DNA of 64,000 nt from Octopus sinensis (lineage: Eukaryota): contig NC_043011.1 of NCBI RefSeq assembly GCF_006345805.1, positions 53,580,464 through 53,644,463 of the forward strand. Direction: 5' to 3'. Below are positions 2,528 to 38,500 of the stretch, one piece after another. Position numbers and translations under genes: made by a program. Positions within the stretch are counted from its first letter, which is position 1. Every line of letters begins with the position of its first letter. The notes beneath the pieces are model-generated. The model had not been told where the DNA came from. It ran no database searches and worked only from the letters and a program-made list of their open reading frames with translations.

Positions 2528-3734
2528 AGGCTTCAGACTGTGAGAGAGGATGTTATTTAATGAGAATGTGAATGTGCTGTTTGTGCTTTATATATATACA
2601 CATACGTGCGTGTATATATATATATACACACACACATGCATATATATATATATAGAGAGGGCGAGAGAGAGAAGAGAGTCAGTGTGTATCTAGGGTGCCG
2701 GCCGGGCACGAATTAATCTCACACACATTTTTTATTTATTTATAGGGGAAGGTTGATAGTTGTGTTGTAACGTTCATGCATCTCCCAATGGGCATCAGCC
2801 AATAAACGTTCCAACTATGTAAAATTCTGACTTGGATTTGTGGTACTATTTTGTAGGCGAGCAAGGAAAATATGGTGGTGGGAGCTATATTGAATAGAAA
2901 GAATAAACTATATAGTATATTACTGGTGTTTATTTTCAGAGAGACATTGGAGGAAGGCTGAAGGACTGAAAAAAAAAAAAAAAAAAAAAAAAAGTAGGCT
3001 TGATTTGAACAGAGCAGTGAGGCACTACATTAGATCCCCGAGATCGGCCGTATACACTACTACCACCACCACCACCACCGTCACTACCACCACTACTACT
3101 ACTACTAGAACACAACAATACCATCACCGTTATTAATGTAGTCACAACAACGACAGCAATTTTAATTTCTTATATATTGACATGTTTTTGTTTTCAGTTT
3201 CAGTGGAGTTGAAAAATAAAATAAAAGATGACATTCATGCCTTTCTTTTGTTTTTTTACTTCCAAAAAAAAAAAAAAGCCATAAGTGAAAACCGAAAACT
3301 ACTACAACCGGAGATCGAAACCGGGTCGCGGACTACTTTTACAACAGTAACTGGCTACACAACAACAACAATGACAACTACAACAACCACGCCAAATAGC
3401 TGCTATGTGGTAAATGCTAATAGAACATCGTGACAAGGGCAGCTGTGATGGTGGCAGTTGTCTCCCCCTGAACTAGAGTCCTAGAAACCTGTTTGGGAAG
3501 TCTTGTCTCTCTGTCTCTCTTTCCTTCTTTCTCTCTCTCTCTCTCTATCTCTCTGTGTGTTCGATTTTTCTGTGTCTGTGTGTTCGATATCGCCTACTAC
3601 TTCTCTGTCTTTCTTCCTCTCTTCCTGTCGCTCCATCGACTGCTGCTGCAGTAGTTGGTGTCGGTGGTGGTAACGTAACGATAAGCGGCGGCGGGAGGAT
3701 GCGTTATAACGGGAACAGCCGACGTCTCACTCAC

Positions 3735-3766
3735 TTCAGCTACTATATTGCTTTATCTCCACCAAT
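3735..3766 (-). ncRNA. Candidate non-coding 32-nt exon of a divergent (antisense) transcript
   Basis: On the minus strand: (ct)n-gtttcag | ATTGGTGGAGATAAAGCAATATAGTAGCTGAA | gtgagt. Stops occur in all three frames. Confidence 0.35.
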
Positions 3767-4098
3767 CTGAAACAGAGAGAGAGAGAGAGAGAGAAAGTAT
3801 AATAATAATAGTAATAGTAATAATAATAGCAAAACAATCAAAAACTGTTCTTTTTCTTCAGTTGATATTTCCTTCATCTGCAATATATATATACCATTAA
3901 CTTCTACAGCTTTGGTGGCTTTTGTTAGCTTTTTTTTTCGGCTTGTTTCTAAAAGAGAAATATATATAAATACAACAGATCTATGTAATATTCTCAGTAA
4001 GCAGCGAAGGCAGGCCAAGCATGTAGGACTGGTTGTCGTAGAGGAAAAAAGTGAATAAACATAATTGCGTGCTCAATAATATCAGACTTGGCCCACTG

Positions 4099-4108
4099 CT
4101 GACGTCAG
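4099..4108. promoter_or_regulatory. Full palindromic CRE (CREB/ATF) site upstream of ARID1
   Basis: cTGACGTCAg, about 830 bp before the ATG, in a CpG-richer, repeat-free stretch. Confidence 0.4.
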
Positions 4109-4931
4109 TGCGAAAGCCCTTCAGCAAATATGAGCTGGTAGATTTCACTCCTCCGTAACGGAGAAAGAAAAATCAATTTTTACACAACACTCTCGACATA
4201 TCTAGTTGTTTTATTGTAAATAATAAATGTCTAAAATGTTCATCTTGTATCGCATGCTTTCGTGATGGATACGATATGCTCGAATTTCTCGACAATATTT
4301 CAGTTTAACGATCTGGTTTTGTGGAGGGAGGCACTAGCATCAGCTAATTGAAACGCCAGATTTGAAAAGAATGCCTTAGACGTGTCACAACCCAGATTTT
4401 TGTTCTTGCGCTCAGGGAACACTATTGCGAAAAGAATTCCCGAATTTGTTGGAATCATTATTACTCGTTGATAACATGTGTTTTGGGTGAGGAAAACCCT
4501 TTGGCGTATTACCATGGTCCGGAATATTCTCATGCCACCGTAAAGGACGTATTATGGACCTACATAAAAAAAAGCTTATTGCGTATGAATCTGCTCGTTA
4601 AATGCTGGAGATATTCCCGCTTATTGAAGTGTGCCATATAATAGCTGTGTGTATGATAAGACCATGCTGCCAGCCGACTAACTTTTCCCCCAACTGCATC
4701 CTTTTACCCCATCACAAAACACGTGTGTCGAAAGTCTGAAGACAGGTCGGAGAGGTTTTATAACATTTGGATACTCTTTGGATGTCGACTAGAGGTCGTT
4801 CTACAGATTTTTCTCACAGGGTGTGTGCTTTGCATTATGCCTGGGCTACCTGTCACTGTGGCCGAAAGGCAGAAGAAATTCGAAGAATTTAAGTCACCTG
4901 GAAGTACATGAGAGTGGATTAGTGATCTGAG

Positions 4932-5705
4932 ATGGAAAATATTAACTCTGAAGATGGATTAGATCGTGCTGTTACTACTACGAAGCTACGATCACCGAGT
5001 CAAGTCTCAGATTCGAACACAATGGACTCTTTTCAAGATGGTGGCCAGCAAAACATGAACTCAGAGCAAAATGATTATACAGCTTCTTTGGACTCTTCTC
5101 ACGTCAATTCCGAATCCAACAATTATCCACAGAATTCGGGAGATGGAGGTGTGAGTTCAGATAGTTATGCAAGAATGAATGAAAATATTCATCCTACACA
5201 AATACCTGGATTCGGTATGTACGGTAGGGGAAATTACAGCATGGGAGATCAACATGGCGCTATGTCTATGCCAGGAAGTTCGGAGTTTTCAAACCAAACC
5301 TCGCAATATCATGGACAGTATTTACCAACTCATGTTCGGCCTGGATTTCCTGGAGGTCCAAAACCTGGAATGAATCCGATGCGACCAGGAATGGGGACAT
5401 CTGGTATGGGAATGATGCCCCCTTCGTATAATCCTGCCTCGACAAGATTAATGTCTGGTCAAAGCATATCTCAACAGAGCGGACCAACACCGACCCTTAA
5501 TCAGCTTTTACAATCTCCGAATTCGGCTCAGAGATATCCGAATAACTACTCAGAATACGGAGGTTCTCAAAAGGTCCCTGCTGACATGGGCAGTGTGGCT
5601 GGTTACCCTATGCAACAGGCATGGAGTCCCCATCAACGAGGAGCTATAAACGCGTTCCCGCAGACTCAGGGGGCCATATCCGGCTGCCAAGCTTTCCGAA
5701 ATCAG
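4932..5705 (+). CDS. ARID1: ARID1 first coding exon (MENINSEDG...AFRNQ), phase-0 donor
   Basis: In-frame TGA at 4923-4925 just upstream of the ATG. Contains [14 protein letters not shown]. Donor CAG|gtatcc. A possible acceptor at 4818-4819 (ttttctcacag) suggests an upstream non-coding exon. Confidence 0.9.
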
Positions 5706-8700
5706 GTATCCACTCATTTTCTCCACATCTCCAGGCCCCTTTCAACACCCTAAATACATGTCCACATTTTTTCCTCCCCAAATATTACACCCCGTCTGTT
5801 TGCCATGTTTTCATTTCTATGTATTTATATGCTTACACTATGATATTTATATGTATCTAAAACCTACAAATGTTCCTCTATCTCATTATATATATATGTG
5901 TATATATATATATCTATACATATATATATATGTGTATAATGCTACCACTTGTTGACGATATGTTGGTATATTTTGTGAAATATTTATTTATATATATATA
6001 TATATTGTATAGTCAACAGCGTTAGTCATTTTATAGTTTGTACCATACCATACATCTATTTCTGAAAGAGTCGACCAATATATCCACATTTGCGTGAGGT
6101 AAATAATACGGTATTACAAAATTTTAAAAATATTTCTTGTATTTATTTACATATCTGATTAGGTTTGTTTATTATTATTATTATCATCGAATTATTATTA
6201 TTATTATTATCCTCTCCACCACCACCTCTCTTCTTGACTATTGAGCATTTTCTACTAAAAATTCAGGGACCTAGTAACCTCCCCCCTCACCCAGTCCTTG
6301 CTATCTTGTGATTTTTTGTTTACTTTCCTCCCCTCTTCATAAAAAGCCTACCTTTTTTTTTTTTTTCCACAATGAATCATGAGGTAGATACATACATACA
6401 TACATACATAATCATGTTGCTCCTCTCTTGCCGATGATGATGATGATGATGATGAAAGTTTATTTACAAATTGTTTGTTTATTTGTGTTGTTTATTTTTC
6501 GCAAACGGGGTGGAGGTGGTGGTGGGGTGGGGTGGATGAGGGGAGAAAAGCTAAGCGAAAGCTTATTTCCAACCCCCCCTCCCTCTCTTATTGATCTCCC
6601 CCCCTCCCTCTCCGTTTTCAATCTTTCTTTGTCTCTCTCTCCATCATTCTTTCTCTCTCTCCCCTCCCTCCCTCCTTCACTCTTAACATATCTCGATCTC
6701 ACTCTCACTCTCAACATTGTCTTCTCTTCTTCCTTTCTCTTTTCTTCCACCGTCTCTCTATCTCTCGTTTTTCTCTTGTCTGTGTGTCGCATTCTTCTTT
6801 CCATTCTGTCCGTCTCCGTCTCCCTCACTCTCTCTCTCTTTCTCTCCCTTCCTTTCTGTATCCTCCCTGAATCCTCCCTCCCTCCCCCCTTTCTCTCTGT
6901 CCCCTGTCCTTTTCGTCTGCCTCTTCTCTTTCTCCTGATCTCTTGTATCTTAATGTCTCCCACCCCCTGTTCTCCTCTCCCTCATTGCTTGTTTGTATAA
7001 CTCTTTTCTTTCTCTCTCTCTCTCTCTCTCCCAAACCTTCCTCTTCTCTCATTTAGCAGTTATTTCTATCTCTATTGTCAGGTCTGTCCCTTTCTATTCT
7101 CTCATCTAACTCGTTTGCCTTCTCCCTATGCGTTTCATGGGGTCTTTCGTTTTAGGTACGTAAAATCCAAACCTCCACAAGATGTATTAGATCATCTGAG
7201 GATATGTCGACTTGAGGTAGACGAAGGCCGTAAATATATTATTGTCTTTGTGAACACGACGACGCCAGCTGAAGTCCTTAAAACGAAAGATACCCCCGTT
7301 TCTTGCCTTCGTGTTTGTCCTTTTATCACTCTTCTCTCAGTTTCCCCCCGTTTTCTTGCCATTTCTCTTTATCAATCTCTTCTTCTCTCACAGTACATTC
7401 CTTCTTACTTTTTCTCTATCTTTTCCTCCTTCTCCCCCTCCTCCTCCTCCTCCTCCTGAAGTCCTGTCCTTTTCTAACAGTTTTTTTCCCCCCCTGTAAA
7501 TAGATATTTCCATCTCTGTCCCTGTCCCTGTCCTGCGAAGCTATATAGATGTCGAGAGTTGTATCTGTAAGAAAGCTGAGGGGTCCTTCCTTCATCACAA
7601 TGGCTAAGTCGTCTGGTTTAGAGAGTTCTTGCCTGCTTCTGCCCGGTTCGGTTCTCCATATTGATTCAGCAATGGTCTTGATGCCCTTCTGTTACTAAGT
7701 CGCGTCGGGATGGTATTGAACCGAGCAATGGTAGCATTGCGCCATCGGTTATTTTGAATTTGGTGGCAAACTGGTATCTTTGAAAGACAGCTGGGGTGTT
7801 CATAGCAATAGCTTCACATGATTGGTTGCTGTTTTTTGTCATCTAATCAATTAATCTGCCTGTCTCCATCATCACCACCACCCTTTACTTATTTATTTAC
7901 CTATACTTCCCTCCTCTCTCTCACCTTCCCCCAACCTGACCCTTTAATCTTCCTTCCTTCCTTAGTCTCAAACATTAGGGTGGTTAGTTAGCTGGTCACC
8001 TCTCCACTCCCTTCCACCATAGATGTGGTGGATCTTATATCTTTTCTGCAAACCAATATTTGTAGCTTGTTGTTTACGGTATATGGCTTTTGGAGTCTTA
8101 TTTTGTTGTTGTTTGTATATTTAATAACAACACAATTTCCAACAGAAACTTCCTCTTGAATCTTGAATCATCCAACCTTATTTCAAACAGCTCTTCCTAA
8201 CAGCTTTAATGTATTTCTTCTATAGAGCAAAGACAGTTATATAGCCAACTGTTCTAGATGACAACTATAATAACGATGAACTATAAAAATGATACAATCA
8301 GTGATTGTTATTGTTTATTATTGTTGTTATCTTGTTAAGTTGTATTTTATTGTTTCACTTTTAATCTTGGTTTCCTTTTTTTTCTTTTTGCACACTCTGC
8401 TGGTTAGTCACACTGCCTTATACAGGAAGTAGTAGACATCTGCATATATACATGTGTGCGTGAGTGTGTGTGTGTGTGTGTGTATGTACATGTATATATT
8501 TATATATATCTATATAAATTTTTTTTTTTTATGTTATTTGTTTACTTGGCTTCATCCTTATGTTGATTAGCCATGTGCTTTTTTCTCACCTTCACCTAAG
8601 TTATTCATTCAGATGTCAGGGCCAATTGCTGCTGCTGTCATCCAAACTATTCTTACCTACCACTCCCACCTGCTCCAGTCTCCATACACTTTCATCATAG

Positions 8701-11700
8701 TACAGCAACAACAACAATATACAGAGCTGAGAAAATATCTTATTCATCTGCTACTATCAACTTAGTCTTTTTTTTAAAGATGTTACCCTCACACTTTCTG
8801 GTTGCTTTATCACTTAAATCATTTTAATTGACTATATATATTAGTGTTGCTCTGTGCTGTACAATAATGTCCTCAATGGAAATATTTAATTTGAAATCAT
8901 TCATTATTATCAACCAAGGTTCTTATGGAAAGCATGAACATCTCAACATCTCCTTTAGTATTAAGTCCCCAAAGTTTGTATTTGCCATGGCTGCTGTAGA
9001 TGGCCTTTTTTTTTTTTACAGTCTCCTTTTCTCAATATACACTTCACTTCACCCTCCATTTTACAGAATTGCTAATAAATATTTCAGTTTCCACATTATA
9101 AATCTTTCTCAGTGTCTCTCACAAAACACACAGGCACACACTCACACATTATGAGCAGGAACTGTTAGAACAGTCTGTTTTGTGTTTCCCCCATATTTAT
9201 ATTTTATTCACTATAAAGCTGTTAAGATAATCTTAGACTAATGTTAGCATGGGGCAAGAGAAGCTGTGACTGGTGATTCAAATTACATTAATGTATGAAA
9301 CACAAATAAACACAGCCTCCAGTCTATACCGGCTCTACCTCTTATTCGTATTGCTTAAGGTCGCCACTACCCATATTTATTAATTACCCAAAATCTATTC
9401 CCCCCTTTTCTGTTGGGATTGTTGTGGCTTCAGTAGGCCACAGTTTCCACATTTGTTGTTGTTGTTGTTACTAGTAGCAGTACAGTGTATTATCGATAGA
9501 GAACGATCTCTGTCTGTGGAGTAGTGCATCGCCATAACTGCTACTTGGTTGAGCTGCTGCGACTAGCTGAGCTGGTTGAACTGGATGAATGAGAATAATA
9601 AGCAAACTTCTCGACGCTGTTGAGAGATGTTGTAGCAGGCTAGGAAAATAATAAATTATTTCTAATATCTCTCTGATGATTATTATTAAAATAGAATGGT
9701 TCTGTGTTGAATGAAGATCCTCCCAATTAAGTTTTATGTATAAGTGTAATTATTTTTTAATGAAGGTTTCATTTGTAGAATAGAATGAAAAACCCTGAGA
9801 AGCACGTCCTGTTTCGTTCGTGTCTACCAAACCTATCACGACAGTCGGGGTTTTGGCTGTTATAAACCGAAGCAACCCCCTTTATTCAAGAAGAGGACAT
9901 GGTTATAATATAGAGAGGCTAGGGGAACGAAGTTTTAGTAATTGCTGCTCTGACTTAACACTTAGCACACGTGCACCCAACAACATCCATCCATCCATCC
10001 AAAAGGATGGCTTAATAGGTAACAGTTGGTGGCATTGTTTTTGTTGGTTATTTTTTTGTTTTGCTTTTTCGTGATAATAAATAATCACGAAAACGTTGAT
10101 AATGATAATCATTTTCCACCCCGTCTCTAGTCCGTCTCTCGGCAAGCCATACATACCCCCCCTCCATCCTTGTATGGTTGGCTCTCTCTCTCTCGTCGCC
10201 ATCATCGTCCGTGTAATAAATAAATATGTAATATCGTACACTTTTCTCTCGTTCCACTTTCGTTTCCCGTCCCAAATAATATAATAAATATATTTTGTTG
10301 TTTAGTTTAAGCTATCTTATCATCTGAGAGCAGGAAATCTCAACCCTATTTCAAATAGTGTATAGACACAAGCCATTCGCTTCTCTCTATTCCTCATTCA
10401 CAGAGCCATTACTCATACTTTTCCTATTTCCACCAACGATCTGGGTCGCTCTATATTAAGTCTTGCTTTCTTGCTCAGCACTACTGCTTTCTCTTCACAT
10501 CAACCGGCTGCAGTTTTATATATATTCAATAACTTACTAGCTACTTACTGTTGGGGACAATTTTTCTGTTAATAAATTACTATTAAAGTTTATTTTATTT
10601 AACAAACATATATTTTCTTTCTTCTCTTCTCTTCGCCTCCTCTCTCTCTCTCTGTCTCTCTGTATCTCCTCCTCCTGTACCTCCTCTCTTCACAAGTCTT
10701 GAGACTCCTTCCCCTCCTCTCCAACATGTCTCTGTTCACTGTTTTGTGTTCACAGCTCAAAATGCTGAAATATAAATAAATGTGTGTACATTTCGTAGTC
10801 GTATTTCAGTATGTATGATAAACTTGTTAGTGATTTACCGTTGTGGTGGTCAACCACCACCGTAGAGTTAGTTTCGATGAAATGAGTCAAAAGCTGTTTT
10901 CTAGTTCACATCCCAGCTCCGACAACGACGACTAATTTCTCTCTCTACCTCCCCCTCTATCTTCCCTTTGTACTTACGGCTTTGCTTTATAACATTCAAA
11001 ACCTTTATTTCCTTCCATACCTATACTTTTATTAAGTACGAGTCTCTTCTTAATTTCGTCTCTCGGTGTTTATATCTATTTTGGAAATAAAAAACCAGAT
11101 TTTGAAAAATTACCCCAACCGCAATCTTTTTGTCTCATTTTCCCCCCACATCTCTTATCTACCTCGGTGACTTATTAATCAACGGCTTCTTGTACTTTTA
11201 ACCGATAATAACCGACAATTCCTCACTTGGAATCTATTTTAAACATTTATAAACGCATTCTCCTAACATTTCTTTTAAACGGTAACCATTTTGTCGCTCG
11301 ATTTTTTTTTTCCATGACGTACAGGATTTAATTTCCTTGATTTTTTTCTAGTTTAATGATGTATTTTTTTTGTTTTGCCACTGTGAGTGAATTAATGTTG
11401 GAAAAATGATATACATTTATGTTTTCGTTACTCTAAATTCAAAACCAGTTCTGACAATGAACGAGGAGTAGTGTGATGTGTATGTCTTAATTTGTATGTA
11501 TGTGTATGCGTGTTGGTGAAACAAAGAAACGTGTTTAAAATCCTTCTGAAGACGGTGGTGTTTCGATCGTTCTATTTCGTTGTTTAGTTTTCTAATCTAC
11601 CGTTCAAGACACTGCCGTATTGCTAATGGTGATATTCATGTTAGTGTTGCGAATAGTGAGAATAATACTATTGATTTGAAAGGAGTAATAGCCATTTTAT

Positions 11701-14700
11701 TAACGTAGTGTTTGTGATTCTGTCAATTGACCTTGCAAAGCGTTTGGAGTAGTTTCGAGTTGTTTCCCTTATATTTTTCAAAAGGCATGGTCAGGCCCGA
11801 GCAATTTTCTCTCTCTAAAAAACCAACATTCAGGACAGTCCCAAATTTACACCCTGTGGATTTCACTAGATTTCAATCAAAATAAAAGTCTAAATTCTCT
11901 GGCTACATGACATCCGGAAGTGTGGGGTGGTAGTTAAACATGGCTCGTCTTTACGTCACTCTGCTTTAATTTAAAACTCTTCTTAATCATTTCTGAGTAA
12001 TTATTTATAAAGTTTTTTTTAAAAATAACTTTATATGATTCGATCAATTTAGATTTATAAAATATACAGATTTACTGTGTCATAAGTAATATCTAAAATC
12101 TGGCTTTGACAATACAAGTTGCTGTATAGAGATATGGTAAGGTGGTGGTGGTGGCGATGGTTGTTTGTGTGTCATCGAAATGGTTGCATCTGTTTACTAT
12201 TTTATATAATAATTGTTTATTTTAATAAAGCTTTTGGAACCTGACTGTTTTGATTCGCTGTACAATTAAGATTTTTAATTGTTACGTTTTACGTGTTCGA
12301 AACTGGTTGTCTCCCTTGTTTGGAGTTGGTATCGTTTCCTCTCTTGGTTTCGCTTGTTTCCTTTTGGTCAGTTTATTGTCAATGACTTACCACACTATAT
12401 TACTATTCATCTAGTTTGGCTTGGTAAGGATCGCTGTATTTTTTATTTCAATGGATATATAATAGACTCTTGTTAATTTCTTTCGCTTTCATCCCAAGAT
12501 AATTGTGTGTGTGTGTCCTTATTACCAGCAAATTATACTACATATAGTCGGACATGCCCATTTAAACCATTGTTGCGGAGATCACATGATGATTGGAGCT
12601 GTGCAAGCTACTTCACATAGCAATTTTATACAGCATTCTAACAATTTGTAAATAAATATCACCACTATTAGATATCGTCAATATATCAGATAATTGCTAT
12701 GCAGTCCAGTTGTGTTTTTGATTTTTACTTGTCAATATTTCTTAACAGTTAAAAACTCCAAAGTGAGAAATATTTGCTTTCACACACAGGGCTTAGCGTG
12801 AATAAAATGTATGAAGATTGTTTGAACTCGGTGCTTTTTGGTGATAACCTAGATAGACAGGGCTTGTGTTTTTGTTTATGTAGCTAATGTAAATTGTTAA
12901 TTACCTATTTGGCTTCGCAACTGTGTCTTTCTTTCTTGTTTTGTGTTACTTAAGATAAAAAAAAAAAACAGAATTTACATTGAAGCTAGCGATATTTTTA
13001 ATAGCGTGTTGTCAAATACTTATATAGCCAGTCTTAGAAGAGGCTTTCTAGTTATTGGTGCTAATGTAATAAAGAAAAATTACTATAGACTTATGGAAAT
13101 TTCCTATCTTTTGAATATCTGAGTGCTTTTCTATGTGACCTAAGAAGAGAATTCCATTATTCATTAAAATAATTTAGAAGAATGTTCATTATTCCGTACT
13201 TGTAACTCTACTTATTTACATCAATAAAACATTTGTGTCTTTACAATTATCGTTATATCTTCAAAGTTCTATTCTTGCTTGTCTCTTGAATGCCGTTTGG
13301 TTCCTTTAGCGACTGTAGACTATATTACACAGTGTATAGAGGTCTTGAATATCCCTCTTGCTAGCCAACATCTTAGTTGTTTTGCCCTGTTGACTCGGGG
13401 GTGTGTATCGCAGTAGCATTTTGGTTTGTCCAAATTCTCTGATGTCAGTATTGATATCGCATTTTCTCTCTTCTTTTTTGATTTGCTTCCTTTGACTAGT
13501 GACACCTGCATATTGTGAGGGCAAATGTGTACAAGTTAGTATCTAATGTTGTATATTGTGTTCATAGCCATTTGCAAGAGTTTAGTTTTACCTTGCAAAA
13601 AAAAAAAAAAATGTCTTTCCTGTCCATGAATTAGTTCGGTCTATAAAGCAGATTCATGTTAAAAACCAACAACCATAATAGTAATTGTAACACGAAAACA
13701 ACATGGCATATTGTCTGAAATGTTAACATTTAGTAGATGTGAGTCTTTATTAAAAAATTGAGTTGAATATACATTTCATGTTTCTAGTTTTACTCTTACA
13801 GTTATCTCTAAGTTGTTTTTCAATCTAAATTTAATATCAATAAAATACCAATTGCAGTTGGAACTCTGAAGAGTATATATAATGTTTTGCTTTAGCTCTT
13901 TATCTATTTTATACATATTGTAGACGACCTGGTATTTTGTTTCGCTTTCACAATTAATATAAAGAGTTTAGTATATCCTATGAATGGTCTTCAGTATTTG
14001 AAACTTACATAATTTAAGAATAAAATGTTTTGGTGCAATTCAAAATTTATCATCTTTGTTTGTTCTAATAGATGCCATTTATTTTTTTTGTTGCAGGGAG
14101 GTGGAAATATGAATGAAATGCCACAACAAAGACGAGCCTCAGGTATTCCTAATTTTCCTCAACAGACATCTCAATATAACAATCAACAATTTTCACCTAA
14201 TTCCCAACGTTACATGATGGGAACCGGACAGGTTCGTTCAGGACAAATGAGCCAGCCCTATGGACAACAGGTAAGTTTTCGTTCAGTGCAGATGATTATG
14301 GAAATTACCTGCTTCTCTACTTGAAACTTCCCAATCTAAATAAATGAAAACGGAAAAATTTAATTGGTCTTTAATAGTTTTTTAAATATAGATTTCAGTA
14401 AGCGAAATACATTTAGCTCCAAAGAAAGGGAGACTCGTTTAGTGTGCATATACCGTACCTAGTTTAATTCATGACCAGTATGTTGAGATACGGATAATTT
14501 TTATGTTTAAAATTTTATTTTTCTAGCATCAAGGTGACTTGTTCAGTTATAAACCTGGTAAACCACGAATGGTTGATGTTAACAAGGTAATATTTTTATA
14601 CCTATCAACTTAGTTACATATTATTTTAAAATTTTAGTTCATATTTTTCGTAGCTGTTTTAGTTTTTAATTATTATTTTTTTGAAAATTACTATTCGAAA

Positions 14701-16407
14701 TAAAAGAATATATTCTATTTTAATTTCTGAAAACTGGTCCATGGTTTATTGAAGTGGGTGAAACATCAATTTCATTTCATTTTGCTTAGCAATAGGTTTA
14801 TGAAGGTTAACGTTATTATTTGAATAATCCTTAAGGCAGTGAGTGGGCAAAATACCTTGTTGTATTTAGTTACACCCCTTTACTCTCTGAGTTGAAGTTT
14901 TGCTAATGTTGGTTCTGCCTATCATTGTTCTAGGTTGATTAAAGAAGTACCTGATAAGTGCTTGCATTGACTATACACTCCCTCGAAATCTATAGATTTG
15001 AACCCATGTTAGAAATCCTTATTAATTGTAGGTGACATTGCTAATGTTTGATCTGTGTAGGCTGTTAAACAACCGCTATTATTTTTAAATAGTTGTCGGC
15101 TATTTCTTTCTGGGATCAGTAGAATTAGAATTGACCAACACCTTTCAATCACAGACATTTATTACCGAACAACCACAGTTGCACTTCGAGTTTAGAAGAG
15201 TGTAAATGTTATTGCTATTAAGCATAACACCAGTAAAACTAAAAACTAAGTTTCAAATGGTGTGATGGTGCTCTCAATGGTATATAATCATAAAAATAGT
15301 AGCAGTCAAATTTAGATTTTTTTTCGACATCTACCATCATCAGGTTTCATTCAATTTATAGCTTACAGATATTTATTTTAAATTCTTAAGTTTAAATTAT
15401 TGCTCTAAAAGTGTAGGAAATTTTTGCAACTAAATGTATTTGGATTAAGGCGAAGATATTAAATTGTTTCAAATGTTTTTCATCATGGAAAAATTAAAGA
15501 AGGTATTTGTAAATAATATTCTAGTGACTGAGACTCAGGAATCAGTATTATTATTGAAGGCTAATATTTGTGTTTTTAGTGTAGCTACAGTTTGAAGACT
15601 TATTGATTTCTTTTGTCTTGAAGCTATTTTCTCTTGATCTGGTTTAAATTTCATTTAAATTTTTAATGATAGCCTCACCAACAATCTACAATATTATTTC
15701 TTGTTAAAGTGGAATACCATTTCTTCTTCATTATTATTTTATCAGTAGAGAGACTTGTATACTGTGCTTAGCAACAGAACTGGCGTGCTCATGCTTGTAG
15801 GAGCAATCTGACACTGCTTGGTAAAAGTCATATTTACATGAAAACATTCACTATTTGACATCGTTTTCTTAAATTATGATTCCCTCCTCCTCCTCTTTTT
15901 ACTCCCACAATATATTCACTTGCCAGATTTATAAGTAATTTTGTGTATATATATATATATATACACATACACACCCACACATACAGGTACACACACACAC
16001 ATAGCTTCATATTTGTATCTTAAGATAACATTTTGTCCACTCATCATTGAAGTTTCTTGTTGAAAAATATGGTAAACTTTCTTTTGTCAGCTTCAGTATA
16101 CTTTGTAGATTGTTTCCTAATTATACCTTGACTACTCCATTGTGTCAGAATATCAGAAACCACTACATTAGCACATTTCTTGATAGTTTCTGTGTTAGAT
16201 ACTGACAAAATTGTTAGTTTTGTAGCTAAACTAAGCAAGAGTAATGTACCTTGTCTGGAGATGTTCAGTGAAAGCTGTAACGCAGAGTAAACTTTGCAGG
16301 TTTTTGGTATACAGATAAGAGTGTTCTGTTGAATGTAGTTTACCCTAAGAAAAATTAATTCTTTATTCATGTAGTAGTCAGCTAATGCCTCATTACTGTT
16401 TGACTAT

Positions 16408-16444
<37 letters not shown>

Positions 16445-16870
16445 TGTGTAGAGTAAGAATAGTTAATAGCTCTATCATGACTACTGTATAGTGTTTCTAC
16501 ACTGTAAGTCCAGTTATTGGTAAGATGGAAGGGCAAGTTTTCTTTTAAATTGTTTTGGTTGAAATCTTACTTCAAAACTAAATTTATATATTATTTTCTT
16601 AGTTAATTGCATTGATTAAATAAGAGTTGATAGATTGTTTCATTGGTTTTTTTTGTGTTCGTTTCATTGTAGATACCTGGTCAATTTGTTCCTAATCAGA
16701 TGGTCTTCAACCAATCAATGGCTGTTTCACAACAAGTGGTGCATCAACAACAACCTACACCACAACAACCACCACAGCCTCCAGGGCCCTCTCCACCAAG
16801 ACATTCTCCACAAGCTCCACTAGCCACTCCACCAACATCAACTCAACAGCAACAACAACAACAACAACAA

Positions 16871-16914
<44 letters not shown>

Positions 16915-19900
16915 ACAACCAACGTCCCAGTCCCAACCGTCCCCTCAATCACAACAGCAACAAAGTTCACATACTCCTCAACCATCCCCACTTCAGAATC
17001 AGTCTCCTCAGCATAATCAGCAAAACAGTCCTCAGGTTGGTTTTTTTCCTCTCCTCTTCAAAATGCAGTGATCGTTGCTCATTGTTATCTACACAGCCAC
17101 AGTTGATTATGATGATAATGGTAGGCAGATGGCCAAATGAAGGGTTGTCTGTTCACATTTTCATTATTTAGTGTTGTGCTGTGTCTGTGGCTTGCTCAAA
17201 AGTTCCCGGCTTTGAGTAAAAGGAGGATCATTTAATTGTGATTTTTTTCAGCATATTCACTTCTCAGATTCACAAACTTAATGCAATGGCCCTTCAGATT
17301 TTTTTAAGCCCTGTAAAAGAACTCGGAAAGTTGGGCCTCTGAACAGGCCTTTTGTGATACCCTTAAAACCAGGAATTTTCAGCCCCCAAATTTATACTTG
17401 TTTCTGTTAACAGTTGACCATAGATGAGGCAATATCAGTAATATATTCACCTAGACTAGAATCTTTAGCTTTCTCACTCTGACCGCTAGTTGTGTGTAGG
17501 GCTATGTGTGTTAGTGGTGTGTAACAATTTATCTTCCATTCAATTTATGGACTGCTTGTTGGATATTTGTTATTTTGGATCAGGCACATGGTAATGATTA
17601 TAGAAGCTCATGAAACCTTTGACTTCTCAATTTCTCTTCTCCATAAAGGTAACAAGCAAGACTAGATGCTGATAAGTTATAGCTCCTCCATATTCATGAA
17701 ATTTCACCGGTAGTTCATTAAAAGTCTAAATTAAAGGTGGACTAGTGATCTTGTATGCCAATGCAGGTCATATCTTTACTTGCCAGTGAAGTCATGTTGA
17801 ACAAATTGCTAATGTCTATCGAGGCAATGTTATTGAATTTAAGCAATTATTCATTGGTCTTCATCTGTAATGTGGCCATCGAAATGTAGCATTCCTGATC
17901 TTTACTTAATATCTTTAGGCTGCAGCCATGCTGGGGCACTGCTGTGAAGAATTTTTAGTTGGATGAATCCACCCAAATACTTATTTTTTTAAATCCTGGT
18001 ACTTATTCTATCGGTCTCTTTTGCCAAACTGCTAAGTTACAGAGACTTCTATGCATCAGCACAGATTTGTCAAGTATTGATTTACAAGCACAAATAAACG
18101 TCCACCCACACACACACATACATATACATATGTCAGGCTTCTTTCAGTTTCTGTCTACCAAATTCACTCTCAAGGCTTGGTCTACCAAATTCACTCCCAA
18201 AGCTTGGTTGGCCCCAAGGCAATAGTAGAAGGCACTTGCCCAAGTGCCACGCAGTGGAACTGAACCCAGGATCATGTGGTTGGTAAGCAAGCTTCTTACC
18301 ATATAGCCACGGCATTATTCATTTTGTCTGTGCTATAAAATTCCACAGATAGCAAGAAACTTAGAAGCATTGAGTTTATTAGCTGTAAAATATAATTAAT
18401 CAAATTTGATTGCAAAATTCTTTTTATAGTCCACTCTTTAAAAAGTCACTCCAATATATACTGTGATTTTATTAGTTGCATACATGAAATATTTAACCCC
18501 TTAGCATTCAAATTGACCATATTTGGTCTTTGCTATCGACTCTATAATGTCATTCTAAAAATAAACAATCAGATTATCAAAATCTCAACGCTACAAGATA
18601 ATGCAGGATCAAATTGAAAGCAATATAAATAAATAAGCATCACATTTGAAGAGTAATCTGAATGTTACAGGTTCAAATGTACAAAGGGGTACTGAAAAAT
18701 TCCTGGCTCGAAAGGTATTGCAAATGGGCAGAGCTGTTGCCTTTACAGGGGAGATAGGACAACTATTTAGATGCTCAAAATATTATGATGGTATACAATA
18801 TCTCTCTCCTTTTTTGTAGATTTGTTGCATGATGGCAGCTCCTGCAATAGAGTTTGATATATAATTGGAGCATGGGTGGTCATGAAATCTCTCTTTTTGC
18901 AAGGTAAAGGAGTGGCAAGATGTAAGAAGTCTTGAAGGATGGTTACCCATCTTACTCCACAGTGAAAATCTGGGTGTCAAGACTTTGAACTCAAGTTCTT
19001 GTTATAGGGCTTAGTAAACAAGTGATCCCTGCTCAGGACGGCCAACCTTTGTGACAACAGAGAATGAAGCCAGTGCTGTGCATGTCATTCTCAAGGACCA
19101 CTGGATTTCAGCTAAAGTCATTGCTGAGACTTTGGGGCTTTTCCCACAAAGGAGTTGGTCACATCACCCACAACATTCGGGACATGAGAAAGCTTTCCAC
19201 AAAGTGGGTTCCGGAATTCTTGAACACAGACCAGAAGTGCATCAGAGTGACAACATCAAAGGCAATTTTAGACCGGTTAGCAGCAGGAGAGGCTGATTCT
19301 ATGGTTTGTTAAGTCACCATGGTGATACTTGGCTTCATTATAATGATCCCTGACCAAGCAGCAATCAATGAAGTGGCATCGCTGCAGTTCATTGTGTCCC
19401 AAGTTTTGGTGCCAGAAGTCAGCTGGAAAGATTCTGGCCCCCAGTATTCTGGGACAAAGATTACTCATTGTAAAATACCTGTCAAAGAGTCGCACCATCA
19501 ATGCAGAATACTACATGTCTCTGTTGGATGAAGCAGTAACACCGTGAAAAGCTGAGCCATGGTGTCCTGCACCAGTGCACACAGCATATGAAACTCTACA
19601 GAAACTATGCGACTTTGGCTTCAAATTGGTAGACCTCCCACCTTACTCTCTTGACTTTGACCCCCTCTGACCGTCACCTCCTTCCTGAAGAAACATTTCA
19701 AGGGAATGAAATTTCACTCCCAATTTGGAAGTGAACGTTGCTACAGAAGCCTGATTGGAGTCCCAACCTTCTGAGTTTTTTGTTATAGGGCTTAGAAAAC
19801 CTGAAGGGCTAGTGCAATAAGCGTGTGAATTTGAGTGGGGAATATGTTGAATAAAATCATAATTGATTCGGTAAAAAATACAGGAGGATCGCCTGTATTT

Positions 19901-22900
19901 TCTTTTACTGAAAGCCAGGAAGTTTTCAGCATCCTCTTGTATTCAACACGGTCATTAAAAAGATGCTCTATTGATAACATGAAAAAAAATTTTTTTTTGT
20001 AATAACTAAATAGCTAGCCACCATTGTTAGCCTGTTACCAGTAACTGCATGTTTATTATTACATGCAAAGAAACCCAACAAAGTCTCAGATAACTAAAGT
20101 TTAACCACAACCAAAGGCCGTATCCTATCCATAACGGTCAAAATTTTCCATAAATTTGTGTAACAATAATTTCAGCTCAACCTATTATTAATTGAGAAAT
20201 GAAAACTTTTACAATTTTTGTGATCTTCATCGTCAGATTATCATTTGTTTGACAGTGAAATTTTCTTAATTGTGAGAAAAATATTGTGTTTTAGAGCAAT
20301 GTAGAGGTAGACTAACAGAGTTAATAAAGGTGACAACAGTGGCTTTGTTTAGTTTTAGTTTACCTGTGCAAGGAATTAATTTAAAGAGCCAATAACTTCT
20401 GTATGTAATTTAGTTATTTGAAAAATCTAAACTTTTAACATCCGTTGCAGATGTAGCCTTTCTTGTTATATTTTGAACTAAAATTGTGCTTTAATTAAAT
20501 TTTAAAATGATTGTGAATTTACACTGGTTTCATAAAATAATTAGTCATTTTGTTTCAGAACTATTGTAGTTTACAGGTAGAATGTGAAATATCAGTAATT
20601 TAGATATTATCATATAAAATGAGTTACTAATATATATCTGTGGTTTATAGTCAGCCATAAAGTGGATCTTCAGTCATGTCTAATTGGGTTTGGTTCTTTT
20701 GAAAATTTAGAAGAGAAATATTTTAAAATTACCCAAGAAGAAATAAAAGGGTTGATTCAGAGAAAAGTATCTACAAAATATTCAGAAAACTATTTATACT
20801 GTAAAATTGTCTGTGTGCAGCAGATGCATAGGGAAATCTTGGCTTATCACTTATGTTGTAATGATATTTACGTTTGATAGATTTAAATACGAATAGGTAA
20901 ATGTGAGTGGTCACTGGCGCTTTGGTATTTTATGATGTTGGCTAAATGGTGGGTTATTAAGGAAAGTGGAGTCAAGACATTTCAGGAAAATGTAACTTCA
21001 CTTAATGAAACATAGGTTGGTTCAATTTATCAAAGGATATTGGAAGGAGATGATTGAAAATACCACAAATGAACATAATGAATGTTGTGATGTTGTTCTA
21101 TAGTTATTTCTAATAACAAGAACAAAGAATGGTTTGCCTTTCTGAAATGCATTGGCTTGATTTCTTAAGGTACCCAACCTCTATGAATGGAAATTTACTC
21201 TATTAAAGATGTTTATGCAATAGCTACATATTTCTGTTAATTATTATAAAGTTACCATAAGGCAGTGAGCTGGTCAGAATTGTTAGCATGCCAGACAGTG
21301 CTTTAGTGACATTTTGTCCATCTTCGGAGTTCAAATTCCACCGAGATTGACTTTACCTTTCATCCTTTCAGTGAGGTTGATAAAATACCTGTCAAGTACC
21401 AAAGTTAGTGTAATCGATTTCCCCTTCCCTTCAAAATCCCTTCTGGCTCTGCCAGAATTTCTAACCTTTATTATATAATCAACTTAAATTTATTCCTTGC
21501 AGAATGTAACTCGCTCTCATGGTAAAAAAAGCAATGATGACGGTGAAGGAATGGTGAGTTTACATTCCAACATTTTCTGCTTGACTCTAAATAAAAAAGC
21601 ATGACATTTATAGTTGGTTAACTTCATTAATTTTGTTATGCCATGTTATTAATTATGCACTAGAGACATTCATAAAAACCACAAGCACACATTTATTTTG
21701 ACCATATATCATCACATAAAATTTTCTACGTTCTTATGGAATTTTTACTTCTTTGCAAACTTACTTCCAATGGAATACATAAGAAAACTATAATTGGTAT
21801 ATTTAACTGTTTGGGTCAATGTTGACATTAGTTCTTAAAATATTTTACTTAGTTGGGTTGTAAATAAGAAGGAAAAAAGCAAAAAAAAGTATATAAAACT
21901 AGAAATGGCATTGTTAAATGGACTGAAAAATTGCTGATAATTTTCTCTTATTTTTTTAAAAACTTTTTAATTCCTTTTCTGAGTTCATTGGCTAATACGA
22001 GTCCATTATTCATATTTTGTTGAAAGCTTAAGGGTTTTTCCCCTGCCCCTTTTAATTCTTTTGAGTAAGTGTTGGTATTTTGAATTTCTTTACTTTCATT
22101 CAAATTGTTCACTTTATGCAAATAGCTTCCATTCTAGTTCCTTATTTTGAAAACCGATTGCAGAAAACTAAATGGAATTTTGACAATGCCTTTTCTGAGA
22201 TTTCATATATTCTTTTGAGATTTCCTAATCTATAAGTTTTATTTTTGAAGTTAACAACTTAGTTGTGTAATTTTGTTTTGGTTTATTTGTTCTGTGTAAA
22301 TTTCTTGTCTGTGACCAGTTTAGATTTTGCATATCTGAATGTTTTATGAAATCTCAATTTGTAATTGTTCTTTTAAATATTTTATATTATTTTCTTATTT
22401 GAGAATTTAGGTAGATCTTTATCTGTTAGATGTTTTGTAAAATTTATTATCTTTGGGATAGATATATTTCAAATGTAGAAGACATTGGTATTCTGGCTTC
22501 GTATCGTTTTGGCTGTTTGCAATATATATACTGATATTTATCAGAATCTAAGAAATTCTTCTTCTTCTTCTTGTTATTGTATCCACTACGGTGTCGTTCT
22601 CAGAAAAAGAAAACTCAGCCAGTTGTTTTTGTGGGAAACAAGGTAAGTGAGTGTTTTACACTCGAATTCAAGTCTGGCATCTGTATCTTATGGCTGTTCT
22701 GTATTTATGGGCTTTTTTTTTTTTTTACATACTTTTATTGAGAATATCATTTGCATCAATTTAATTTCTCTAAACTTGTAAAATTTAATGGAAAATGGAA
22801 TTTTTGAGTCAATTCATGGAAGTTTTTATTGCCATCAATACTTAAAACACATTTCAATTTACACCCTAAGTGGAGCTAATCCCTTCTTACAAATGCTAAT

Positions 22901-35500: not shown

Positions 35501-38500
35501 CATTTATAGCATTGCATTTGATTTATTGCAATATACAAACCTTTGCTTGTTTTAGTAAAGAGAGAAGTTGTCACAATTAAAAAAAACTGCATGCATTTTG
35601 TGACATTATTATTATCTTAATGGAAAGCTGTTGAATGATTTTGACAATTTCTGCATGGAATGAACTGATGCTGTATAAATTGTCTTTTTTTTTATGTCAA
35701 TATCTTTGGATTTCTTTATTTTTGTTAAGCTTTACTTGTAGATTTTTAAAAATATTGTTTTCTCTACATTCAATATAAGGAGTATCTTTTCTGAAGATTT
35801 TAAAACTTAAGACTCCATATACTTTAGTTCATTGTTCTTTTATTTACTTAATTAGGAACTTCTGAAATATCTAGTTAATATAAAGCACCATCCGAACGTG
35901 GCCAATGCCAGCGCTGCCTTGGCTGGCTTCCGTGCCGGTGGCACGTTAAAAGCACCAACCGATCGTGGCCGATGCCAGACCCCTCCCTGGCACCTGTGCA
36001 GGTGGCACGTAAAAAGCACCCACTACACTCGTGGAGTGGTTGGCGTTAGGAAGGGCATCCAGCTGTAGAAACACTGCCAGATTAGACTGGAGCCTGGTGC
36101 AGCCCCTGGCTTCCCAGACCCCGGTCGAACCGTCCAACCCGTGCTAACGTGGAAAACGGACGTTAAACGATGATGATGATGATAAATCGTGCAATTTCTT
36201 AATCAGATGTATTTGTTGATACCTGAGCAGGTATAGCAGTTGCCATTGTAACTACTATTTCTAAAGTGTATTGTAAATGCTTTAATGCAAGGAACAATAA
36301 AATATGAGATGAGTTATGTGCTAATAATGTTTGTCGATTTAAATAAAATCTTTGACTGGTAGCTGCATAAATATTTATTACTCAACATTTAAAAGACATA
36401 AAAAAGTTTGTAAATAACTTTATTTACAAGCACTTTGCTGGAACTGAAGTTATTCTGCAGAAACTTAGTTTCATAGTTGGTTAGTTGGACAAACACTCGC
36501 AGGGTAATCTTATATACAACCCAGATGAAATTCCTTAGTGTCTCTATACATGAAAATAGTTTTCAAACCACTTCCCTTCCTAGAAAATCATAAGAAGGAA
36601 TTGAACTGGTTTGATTGAAACCTGTAAAAACTGGATAGATTCAAATTTACTCAAAACAATCTTCAGGTTTGAAGGAGTTTGCTTATTTAAGAGGGGTGAC
36701 TAGCAGGAAAGAACTTGACAATATTCCAAGAAGATTGGATACCCGAGTTCACTGCTTCAAATTTGGATACAAGTTCTCCAATCTCTGTAGGTATGTTGGC
36801 CATAAGCTACAGAATAGAGACTTGCTTTAACTCTTTAGCATTCAGATTCTTCTGTCGTCATATATAATGGTTATTTATTCACATTGTCTTGAATTAATCA
36901 TTATTATTCTGTAGCTTCAAAATTTCAATGCTAAGATTGTTTATATTTAGAATGACATTGTAGAGCCGGTGTGAGAGGCCAGATCTAGCTGGTTTGAACA
37001 TAAAACAGCTAGAAAATTTGGGGTTGATGTGGCCTGTTTAAATGCTAATGGATTATTAACTGTGATTTTAATGTAAAAGTAAGGAATTTTTTAGCAATTT
37101 GGTTTCAAGAAGATTATAATCTTCAGATTTGTTTTATTTCACACAAAGATTAAAGTCTGAATGCAATTAGAATATATATATATATAGGTCTTCCTTGATG
37201 GCATTTTTACAGGGTGGGTCAGTGGTGGTGGGTATGGCTTAGAGTAGCCATACTGCATGATGGTTTGTAGCTCTGGTGTTAATATTTTGTCCCAAGTAAT
37301 GTCTATTGTTGGGTTTGATATTGTTTAATTTCCATAGGACGGTGCTAGTTACTGCTCTTGAACAATTCACACACACACACACACACACACATACACATAT
37401 ATATATGCTAAGGAATTTTTGAAATGTTTGCATGTATCAACATTTTCAGTCCCATATTCCAATATGTATTTCTCTGCACTGTCTTGGTTAAAATATTATT
37501 GTAAAATATTACTTTGTAAATATTTTAACATAAATATTATCTATAGAGATAAATAAATGATTGAAAGTTGGAAAACATTTTGCTAGTTGGGTTTCTAAGA
37601 TTTTACCAAACGTTTTGATTTTAGTCTATATTGTGTAAAATTTTTTTAAATATGTAAAATTTTTTGGTTTTCTGTTAACACATTTTCCTCTGTCCTCAGG
37701 AAAGTAACAATACATTTGATGAAATGAGTTCTGAAAATACACGAGGATCTCAAGGTACTCCAACTCCATCGGGGAGTCATCATCCTAGTGTTTCTAACTT
37801 GCGGGTTACACCATCACCTGCTGGCTCAGCTGGATCTCGATCAAATACTCCAGCATCTGTTACAGGTAAACCTCTTCTTTTCTGAAATGTATTTCCTCCT
37901 CCTCCGTTTTATTTAACTTCTTTCTCTTTCTCTTAATTCTATTCTTTCATTGACTCTGATTTCTTAAACTTTTTCATTGCTTGTTTTTTCAATTCCTTCT
38001 TTTCTCCAATTCTTCTTTCATTTTCTCTTCATCTTGTTATTAGCATAGATTTTGACTCAGTATTTCACTTATGAATGTAGATTTCTAGAATTAAGTGTTG
38101 ATTGCTTCAGAAATATGCAAAATTGTAAAATTTCATTCTTTTTCAACTAGCAAAAGAAAAATGGGTGGAGGATTACCTAGCATAGCAGTATAAGCAAAAT
38201 ATTCCTGTCATATTTATAAAATAAAGTTACTCTGTTTTGTATTATTTAAGACCTTTGAACAGACTCTCTTTTGAGTTGTGGTATGAGCTAGGTGTGGTGA
38301 AATGGTTCTTAGAGAGCTTTAATGAAGTTAACCACTATAAAAGTAATGTAGTGGCAGTTGATATTTTCCAAGCACACTCTTAAGTGGTTGTCATTAGGAA
38401 AGGCATCCAGTTGTAAAAACCATACCACAACAGACAATTGGAGTCTGGACAGCTTCCAGTTGGTCAGCTTCATGTTAAACCATCCAACCCATGCTAGCAT

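Follow-up and report, generated by a model that had tools for sequence, protein, structure and literature searches.

The stretch of 64,000 nucleotides of the Octopus sinensis genome analysed here (referred to as the window) covers the 5' half of the cephalopod ARID1 (BAF250/osa) gene, whose disordered N-terminus is assembled from phase-0 exons in an ancient layout. Three small candidate exons, named B, D and E, lie in the long introns between the accepted exons A, C and F of this region (Table 1), out of which D is probably an ordinary exon, and B and E are unproven candidates. The BAF (SWI/SNF) chromatin remodeller has ARID1 as its large scaffold subunit, whose disordered N-terminus is believed to control interactions and condensation. 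Cephalopods, in turn, are known for their unusual RNA-level diversification.

The explanation preferred here, to which about an even chance is given, is that D is a genuine and likely skippable exon, that B, E or both are lineage-specific in-frame cassettes, and that they provide an ordinary tuning of the disordered region. If B, D or E were spliced into the octopus mRNA, a short and more basic stretch would be inserted into a Gln/Pro/Ser-rich disordered region without a change of frame. Such inclusion may be regulated and may have an effect on the protein, which would be that of ordinary cassette-exon tuning.

Table 1. Accepted exons, candidate exons and conserved block in the N-terminal part of the gene (L001, contig of a sister species)
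Feature	Start	End	Strand	Length (nt)	Phase	Lys	Borders and remarks	5' start	3' end
ARID1 coding exon 1	4932	5705	+		donor 0		MENINSEDG...AFRNQ; ORF and donor seen		
Exon A	14097	14270	+	174	0/0	0			TATGGACAACAG (at junctions)
Conserved block centred on B	14405	14604	+				part of 14061-14760 block; 98.5% identity to L001		
Candidate exon B	14527	14586	+	60		3	ttttctag/CAT...AAG/gtaata	CATCAAGGTGAC	GATGTTAACAAG
Exon C	16673	17035	+	363	0/0	0	poly-Gln	ATACCTGGTCAA	AACAGTCCTCAG
Candidate exon D	21503	21553	+	51		2	ccttgcag/AAT...ATG/gtgagt	AATGTAACTCGC	GGTGAAGGAATG
Candidate exon E	22604	22642	+	39		4	gttctcag/AAA...AAG/gtaagt	AAAAAGAAAACT	GTGGGAAACAAG
Exon F	37700	37865	+	166	start 0, end 1	0		GAAAGTAACAAT	

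Gene identity and layout of the N-terminal exons

The product of the exons at 56171-56368, 56997-57216 and 57333 onwards contains an ARID domain (Pfam PF01388), which scores 82 bits against a cut-off of 24.1, and the top full-length matches are the Haliotis osa-like, Plakobranchus ARID1b, Tubulanus ARID1A-like and Lingula ARID1B proteins. The gene is identified from its sequence as an ARID1 orthologue by this domain and by its best full-length relatives, which are ARID1/osa proteins of lophotrochozoans, in agreement with a preliminary description of this DNA. The C-terminal domain BAF250_C (PF12031) is on record in the Lingula and Tubulanus orthologues, and the window does not extend to the 3' half of the gene.

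The borders and phases of exons 1, A, C and F agree with those of Lingula and Tubulanus. Exon 1, which shares 99-100% identity with L001, is homologous to exon 1 of both species, and these too end in ..RNQ or ..YRQ before the gt. Exon A, 99% identical to L001, is the homologue of exon 2, which has 177 nt in Lingula and 183 nt in Tubulanus, and exon C corresponds in the same way to exon 3 (144 and 216 nt, respectively). Exon F holds the conserved motif RP.PSP.GS.GSRS, present in all ARID1 orthologues fetched, and is 81% identical to L002, a contig of a more distant cephalopod. When exons A to G were joined and used for a protein search, only the genomic ORF of exon G was returned; poly-Gln words probably swamped this search, since it missed the ORF of exon A that was later found by HMMER.

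In Lingula, the exon map consists of exon 1, the 177-nt exon, the 144-nt exon, a 66-nt cassette (AYVATRTPNNGKMVLQQDGDLP) and the homologue of exon F, all in phase 0. Since Lingula has this same layout, the arrangement of exon 1, A, C, a small cassette and F with phase-0 borders is judged from the sequences to be ancestral. The cassette is present in XP_013384495 (X1), X2, X4 and X5 and missing from XP_013384498 (X3), X6 and X7, and across the NCBI models X1-X7 the cassette and the homologues of A and C are included or skipped in several combinations. In-frame cassette splicing of this region is therefore already modelled in Lingula and is not new in kind, and other modelled splice variants, N-terminal and pre-ARID, are those of Haliotis and Tubulanus. 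Because the Lingula isoforms vary the homologues of A and C as well as the cassette, combinatorial in-frame splicing of the octopus disordered region is plausible by analogy.

Splice signals and conservation of the candidate exons

The preliminary description had proposed three small exons of 60, 51 and 39 nt, whose coordinates, lengths, AG/GT borders, peptides and phase-0 setting were all confirmed. Each of them has an AG acceptor and a GT donor, is free of stop codons, has a length divisible by 3 and lies inside a phase-0 intron; as the junctions of A, C and F on the relevant sides are all phase 0, the frame is kept by any subset of B, D and E. The three sequences have no further copies elsewhere in the window, and an origin from a repeat or an exonised transposon is thus not indicated.

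Chance expectations were obtained with a crude generic splice PWM, not trained on cephalopods, from 1.28 Mb of Markov-1 sequence. According to this generic matrix, the 31 kb of phase-0 introns would be expected to contain by chance about 0.12 splice pairs at the level of E, about 0.8 at the level of D and about 7.7 at the level of B. Among the 678 real candidates in the phase-0 introns, E and D take the first two places in the ranking of splice scores, E having the best pair in the whole window on both strands (acceptor 2.7, donor 7.9) and D the second best among the candidates, and the reverse strand holds one D-level candidate. The scores of B (acceptor -4.3, donor 2.1) are lower than those of every accepted exon of the gene. 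Given these counts and ranks, the splice pair of E is unlikely to have arisen by chance, that of D is a borderline case when splice signals are considered alone, and the splice signals of B do not set it apart from chance.

Candidate D is probably a real coding exon and the counterpart of the lophotrochozoan small cassette, as suggested by the ancestral phase-0 layout together with the inclusion and skipping of the Lingula cassette in NCBI isoforms; by analogy with Lingula, it is probably skippable as well. It would then be the octopus version of the cassette that other lophotrochozoans have after the poly-Gln exon and before the 'PSPxGSxGSRS' exon. D and the Lingula cassette occupy the same intron, have both borders in phase 0 and belong to the same size class (51 and 66 nt), and they have Gly-Lys in a polar stretch; in some Lingula models the neighbouring phase-0 exons are skipped too. 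In contrast, their sequence similarity is weak and not significant when composition is controlled, and Lingula has one cassette in the C-F intron, whereas the octopus has two candidates.

When included, D would also take the place of a stretch rich in Ser, Asn, Lys, Asp and Glu, which in the N-terminal linker of ARID1 from gastropods, nemerteans and vertebrates lies directly upstream of the exon-F motif (Haliotis ..NNRTSQNKRSESEEE.., Nucella ..STSSRKSEENTES.., fish ..GNSGKTNSEDG..). In Tubulanus, this stretch is split across the ends of the two flanking exons, with no separate cassette exon. When 681 candidates are ordered by their similarity to the C-F linker segments of the outgroups, D has rank 2; shuffled versions of D score equally well (p=0.3), so that the similarity is compositional only, and a residue-by-residue homology of D to these linkers was rejected on the basis of this control. 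Neither the joined ORFs of 20.6-23.2 kb nor the tail of exon C joined to downstream ORFs, used as queries for orthologous contigs of cephalopods in the region of D and E, gave a match. No D- or E-like sequence is present in L002, a contig reaching just 3.8 kb upstream of exon F. The intron between E and F in the window is 15 kb long.

At least one of candidates B and E is probably a lineage-specific in-frame cassette, for which E offers its near-consensus splice sites and B its strong local conservation. Compared with the outgroup linkers, E has no similarity (rank 294 out of 681), no counterpart of it was found in any outgroup protein examined, and as an exon it is unproven. The peptide of E has a hydrophobic core, PVVFVG, unlike the disordered sequence around it.

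In L001, all 60 bases of B are identical (60/60), with one in-frame 3-nt insertion, and the AG and GT are retained. The median identity of 200-nt windows to L001 is 82%, compared with 98.5% for the block centred on B; values this high or higher occur only in exon A and in exon 1 together with the region upstream of it. Identity within the block reaches its peak at B, and the sole indel is in frame. As a control, the chance candidates inside the block were inspected, and 10 out of 12 are also preserved in L001, which comes from a very close species; the preservation of the frame is therefore not specific to B, and its value as coding evidence was downgraded. Contigs L005 and L006 belong to the same species as L001, hence the comparison includes no third species.

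The alignment of related introns had been proposed in the preliminary description as a check. Its outcome is mixed, as the frame and the AG/GT of B are kept in L001, but most chance candidates behave likewise and neither B nor E has an outgroup counterpart among the proteins examined. Degenerate DNA patterns for B and E gave no matches in metagenome contigs. Lingula is without an equivalent of B, its A-C intron having just 214 nt, with no insert modelled at the A/C junction, and B as an exon is, like E, unproven. Further conserved intronic elements without coding features occur nearby, as patches in intron 1.

Lysine content and likeness to known signals

Together, B, D and E carry 9 Lys in 50 residues, whereas exons A, C and F have none and contain 8 Arg. 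The Lys counts had been given correctly, and the accompanying term "Lys-free N-terminus" is true of the neighbouring exons A, C and F only, but other N-terminal exons carry Lys: there are 3 in exon 1, 1 in the exon at ~41722 and 4 in exon G, and the exon at ~48267 ends in a KKKK-containing stretch, in which PPEKKKK is conserved.

A classical bipartite nuclear localisation signal (NLS) is composed of two basic residues, a linker of 10-12 residues and then at least 3 basic residues in 5. Joined D and E are similar to it in that KK is followed by KKK, and differ from it in the linker, which has 8 residues. Regular expressions for the bipartite NLS and for the monopartite K-K/R-x-K/R pattern gave zero matches, and the bipartite NLS that had been proposed for this junction thus failed the classical pattern test. 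An NLS role of D+E is not supported, and a nuclear-import or charge-tuning function of B, D and E has no support yet.

The neural microexon programme of bilaterians depends on SRRM4/nSR100 and comprises exons that are 3-27 nt long, a range that looser usage extends to 51 nt. The candidates are comparable to these microexons in being short and symmetric and in lying within a disordered part of a chromatin regulator, and differ from them in their greater length (39-60 nt); all three exceed the strict limit of 27 nt, and only E and D are within the looser one of 51 nt. Neural or tissue regulation of B, D and E is pure conjecture. A 2026 preprint with splicing data of Octopus bimaculoides does not mention ARID1.

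Competing explanations

A first alternative, possible if rather doubtful, is that only D is real, maybe as a constitutive exon, that E is a chance pseudoexon, and that the block around B is non-coding, being an intronic element such as an enhancer or a regulator of exon A splicing, in which an AG...GT open frame occurs by chance. With the generic PWM, 0.6 B-level pairs are expected in the A-C intron alone, the chance candidates of the block are mostly as well preserved as B, and intron 1 contains other conserved non-coding patches. In addition, the outgroup isoforms lack both an insert at the A/C junction and an E-like peptide, and a D-like stretch is present in every fetched Haliotis isoform, which suggests constitutive use there. 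However, a splice pair at the level of E would be expected just ~0.12 times by chance, and the position of B at the identity peak, with the sole indel in frame, also speaks against this alternative. That none of the three is used, each being an AG...GT open frame that arose by chance among ~680 in long AT-rich introns, is very improbable. By its splice score and, independently, by its linker-like composition, D is among the top two, and its position is that of the Lingula cassette; the splice pair of E is rare by chance, and B is inside an exon-grade conserved block, although the candidates were selected post hoc out of 678, a D-level candidate exists on the reverse strand and the similarity of D to the outgroups is not order-specific.

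The preliminary description had gone further and proposed that B, D and E are all real and included independently in a tissue-specific way, giving up to 8 isoforms, with the Lys residues tuning charge, modification or import and with D+E forming an NLS-like patch. Such a module is unlikely. Every subset of the three would be in frame, their Lys content stands against none in A, C and F, and the Lingula models skip parts of the same region in a combinatorial way; yet the linker from KK to KKK is too short at 8 residues, a monopartite match is missing, Lys is already present in other N-terminal exons, including the conserved PPEKKKK, and B and E remain candidates only. Little credence is likewise given to the view that three genuine exons, included independently and tissue-specifically (e.g., in the nervous system), represent the expansion, in cephalopods, of a single ancestral cassette. 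If it were true, the expanded cassettes would equip an otherwise Lys-poor disordered stretch of the BAF scaffold with further Lys residues, at which acetylation or the attachment of ubiquitin or SUMO could take place, or with a basic patch, and the expansion of one ancestral skippable cassette into several Lys-bearing ones would be a tidy example of splicing that tunes a disordered region.

The ARID1 gene and its candidate exons

The 5' half of an ARID1 (BAF250/osa) gene lies on the plus strand of the window, with ARID exons that score 82 bits against Pfam ARID. In an exhaustive HMMER search, the closest full-length relatives are lophotrochozoan ARID1/osa proteins, namely those of Haliotis asinina (XP_067675307), Plakobranchus, Tubulanus, Nucella and Lingula; the collections searched contained no annotated cephalopod protein of this gene, only genomic ORFs (Logan, ENA assemblies, related cephalopods). 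The exons beginning at ~38722, 41722, ~48265 and ~51399, between F and the ARID domain, were missing from the preliminary description, and the one at 41722 shares 90% identity with a contig of a more distant cephalopod, above its neighbouring exons.

ARID1 coding exons and candidate exons B, D and E in the window. Scores are summed acceptor and donor values; the numbers of equally good pairs expected by chance are rough because the splice matrix is not cephalopod-trained.
Feature	Position	Strand	Description	Score	Expected by chance in 31 kb
Coding exon 1	4932-5705	+	first coding exon
Exon A	14097-14270	+
Candidate exon B	14527-14586	+	60 nt, ttttctag/CAT..AAG/gtaata	-2.2	~7.7 (0.6 in A-C intron alone)
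Exon C	16673-17035	+	poly-Gln
Candidate exon D	21503-21553	+	51 nt, ccttgcag/AAT..ATG/gtgagt	7.1	~0.8
Candidate exon E	22604-22642	+	39 nt, gttctcag/AAA..AAG/gtaagt	10.6	~0.12
Exon F	37700-37865	+
Exon	~38722-38814	+	between F and ARID domain
Exon	41722-41869	+	between F and ARID domain
Exon G	44188-45375	+
Exon	~48265-48452	+	product ends in conserved PPEKKKK
Exon	~51399-51524	+	upstream of ARID domain
ARID-domain exons	56171-56368, 56997-57216, 57333-58224	+

Candidate exons B, D and E match the window exactly in coordinates, lengths and borders as first described, so that the observation itself is confirmed, while its interpretation as a lysine-rich, combinatorial splicing module is partly supported. 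The exon ends involved, at the 3' side of exon 1, A and C and at the 5' side of A, C and F, are all phase 0, and therefore any subset of the three can be included in frame, as had been proposed. Together they carry 9 Lys in 50 residues (approximate net charge +2 for B, 0 for D and +4 for E), compared with no Lys and 8 Arg in A, C and F. The surrounding N-terminus had been called Lys-free, which is true of A, C and F but not of the N-terminus as a whole, as exon 1 encodes three lysines, the exon at 41722 one, G four, and the exon at ~48265 the PPEKKKK motif.

Splice sites and sister-species conservation

All stop-free AG...GT stretches that measure 27-90 nt and are a multiple of 3 long were collected from the three phase-0 introns (31 kb; n = 678) and scored with a simple generic splice-site matrix, and the chance expectation was taken from Markov-1 sequence (1.28 Mb) of the same composition as the window. 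D and E have the two highest scores among the 678, and the reverse strand holds one candidate at the level of D and none at that of E. The accepted ARID1 exons score 3.8 to 17.4 with the same matrix, which places B beneath every one of them.

What speaks for B is its conservation in a closely related octopus, represented by a 13.1-kb Logan contig (SRR11869394) that spans window positions 3203-16873. All 60 bases of B are identical there, the AG and GT are retained, and the only difference is a 3-nt insertion that keeps the frame (HQGDNLFSY...). Identity over the 200 nt around B reaches 98.5% (median 82%), on par with A (99%) and above C (about 90%). The conserved stretch, however, is the whole of 14061-14760, in which 10 of 12 chance candidates are also preserved, and an insert at the A/C junction is absent from every outgroup isoform compared. 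On this sequence evidence, B has slightly less than an even chance of being a real exon. For E, the one line of support is the quality of its splice sites. It does not resemble the outgroup linkers, the protein stretches between the C homologue and the exon-F motif (rank 294 of 681), no copy of it was found elsewhere in the window, searches for orthologous cephalopod DNA turned up none, and its PVVFVG core is unlike the disordered sequence around it. E is a tentative exon too, with odds similar to those of B.

In intron 1, identity to the sister species rises to 97-100% (median 82%) in patches at 8538-8742, 9457-9593 and 10368-10457, which show neither an obvious coding frame nor obvious splice borders and may be regulatory elements. 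The alignment stops at 16873, within exon C's CAG/CAA repeat, and the contig ends ~250 nt further on (its unaligned positions 12749-12995), probably because the assembly broke at the poly-Gln tract; the comparison consequently reaches only as far as the 5' part of exon C.

Modelled alternative exons in other lophotrochozoans

The Lingula ARID1 protein, mapped onto its own locus, reveals the order exon 1 (..FRNQ/gt), a 177-nt homologue of A, a 144-nt homologue of C, a 66-nt exon encoding AYVATRTPNNGKMVLQQDGDLP, and the homologue of F, with phase 0 borders as far as the start of the latter. NCBI models X1, X2, X4 and X5 contain the 66-nt exon, and X3, X6 and X7 leave it out; the C homologue is also skipped in X4 and X6, and the A and C homologues are both skipped in X7. 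With this layout and these models, D lies at the site of a modelled cassette, sharing position, phase and size class with a brachiopod exon modelled as alternative. Gastropod proteins have a stretch rich in Ser/Asn/Lys/Asp/Glu at this position (Haliotis NNRTSQNKRSESEEE, Nucella STSSRKSEENTES), and D ranks second of 681 candidates when local similarities to these stretches are summed. Because shuffled D scores equally well (p = 0.3), the match reflects composition and not residue order, and in Tubulanus the matching residues are divided between the ends of the two flanking exons, without a separate cassette. D scores close to the top by two independent measures and is in the right place, and it is very probably a real exon.

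Lingula N-terminal ARID1 exons are modelled as skipped or included in frame, the C homologue in Haliotis isoform X10 is short of 46 residues, and isoforms of Haliotis and Tubulanus differ in small inserts immediately upstream of the ARID domain. Since these models cover the same part of ARID1, the octopus candidate exons would belong to an already known kind, and alternative use of N-terminal exons has a modelled precedent there. The modelled inserts upstream of the ARID domain comprise 19 residues in Tubulanus (VSDPMLKMHGNSMGPVKEK) and 41 residues following PPEKKKK in Haliotis rufescens. Tubulanus X5 has an alternative first exon spliced to the C homologue, and some Haliotis models include the homologue of the ~51399 exon while others skip it.

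Possible effects and intronic repeats

The proposed likeness of joined D and E to a bipartite NLS is not supported, as they encode KK, 8 residues and KKK, whereas the classical pattern requires a linker of 10-12 residues; the monopartite pattern has no match either. In vertebrate ARID1A, the mapped NLS is located far downstream, and the corresponding part of the gene is beyond the window. The safest mechanistic statement is that B, D and E would be in-frame insertions into a disordered region, to which they would, if used, contribute a small number of basic residues. Any tissue regulation, modification sites or condensate tuning is conjectural.

Two segments of the introns, ~14830-14990, downstream of B, and ~21240-21460, which ends ~40 nt upstream of the D acceptor, are similar by eye (aaggcagtgag..) and may be SINE-like, and blastn of 21200-21700 against the window did not pair them. 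A series of broken ORFs at ~18900-19800 (+), which we take to resemble a decayed mariner-type transposase, had no Pfam match. In the E-F intron, ~24500-31800 contains TA/CA-type microsatellite arrays several kilobases long in total, whose GC skew is extreme and which yield long, spurious ORFs rich in Y/I/C/H/T on either strand, and a 100-N assembly gap (24415-24514) lies at their edge. The same intron harbors a retrotransposon remnant at 27078-27797 (+; Pfam RVT_1 55 bits, PHD finger 25 bits), within which the candidate stretches with the best coding-like composition fall.
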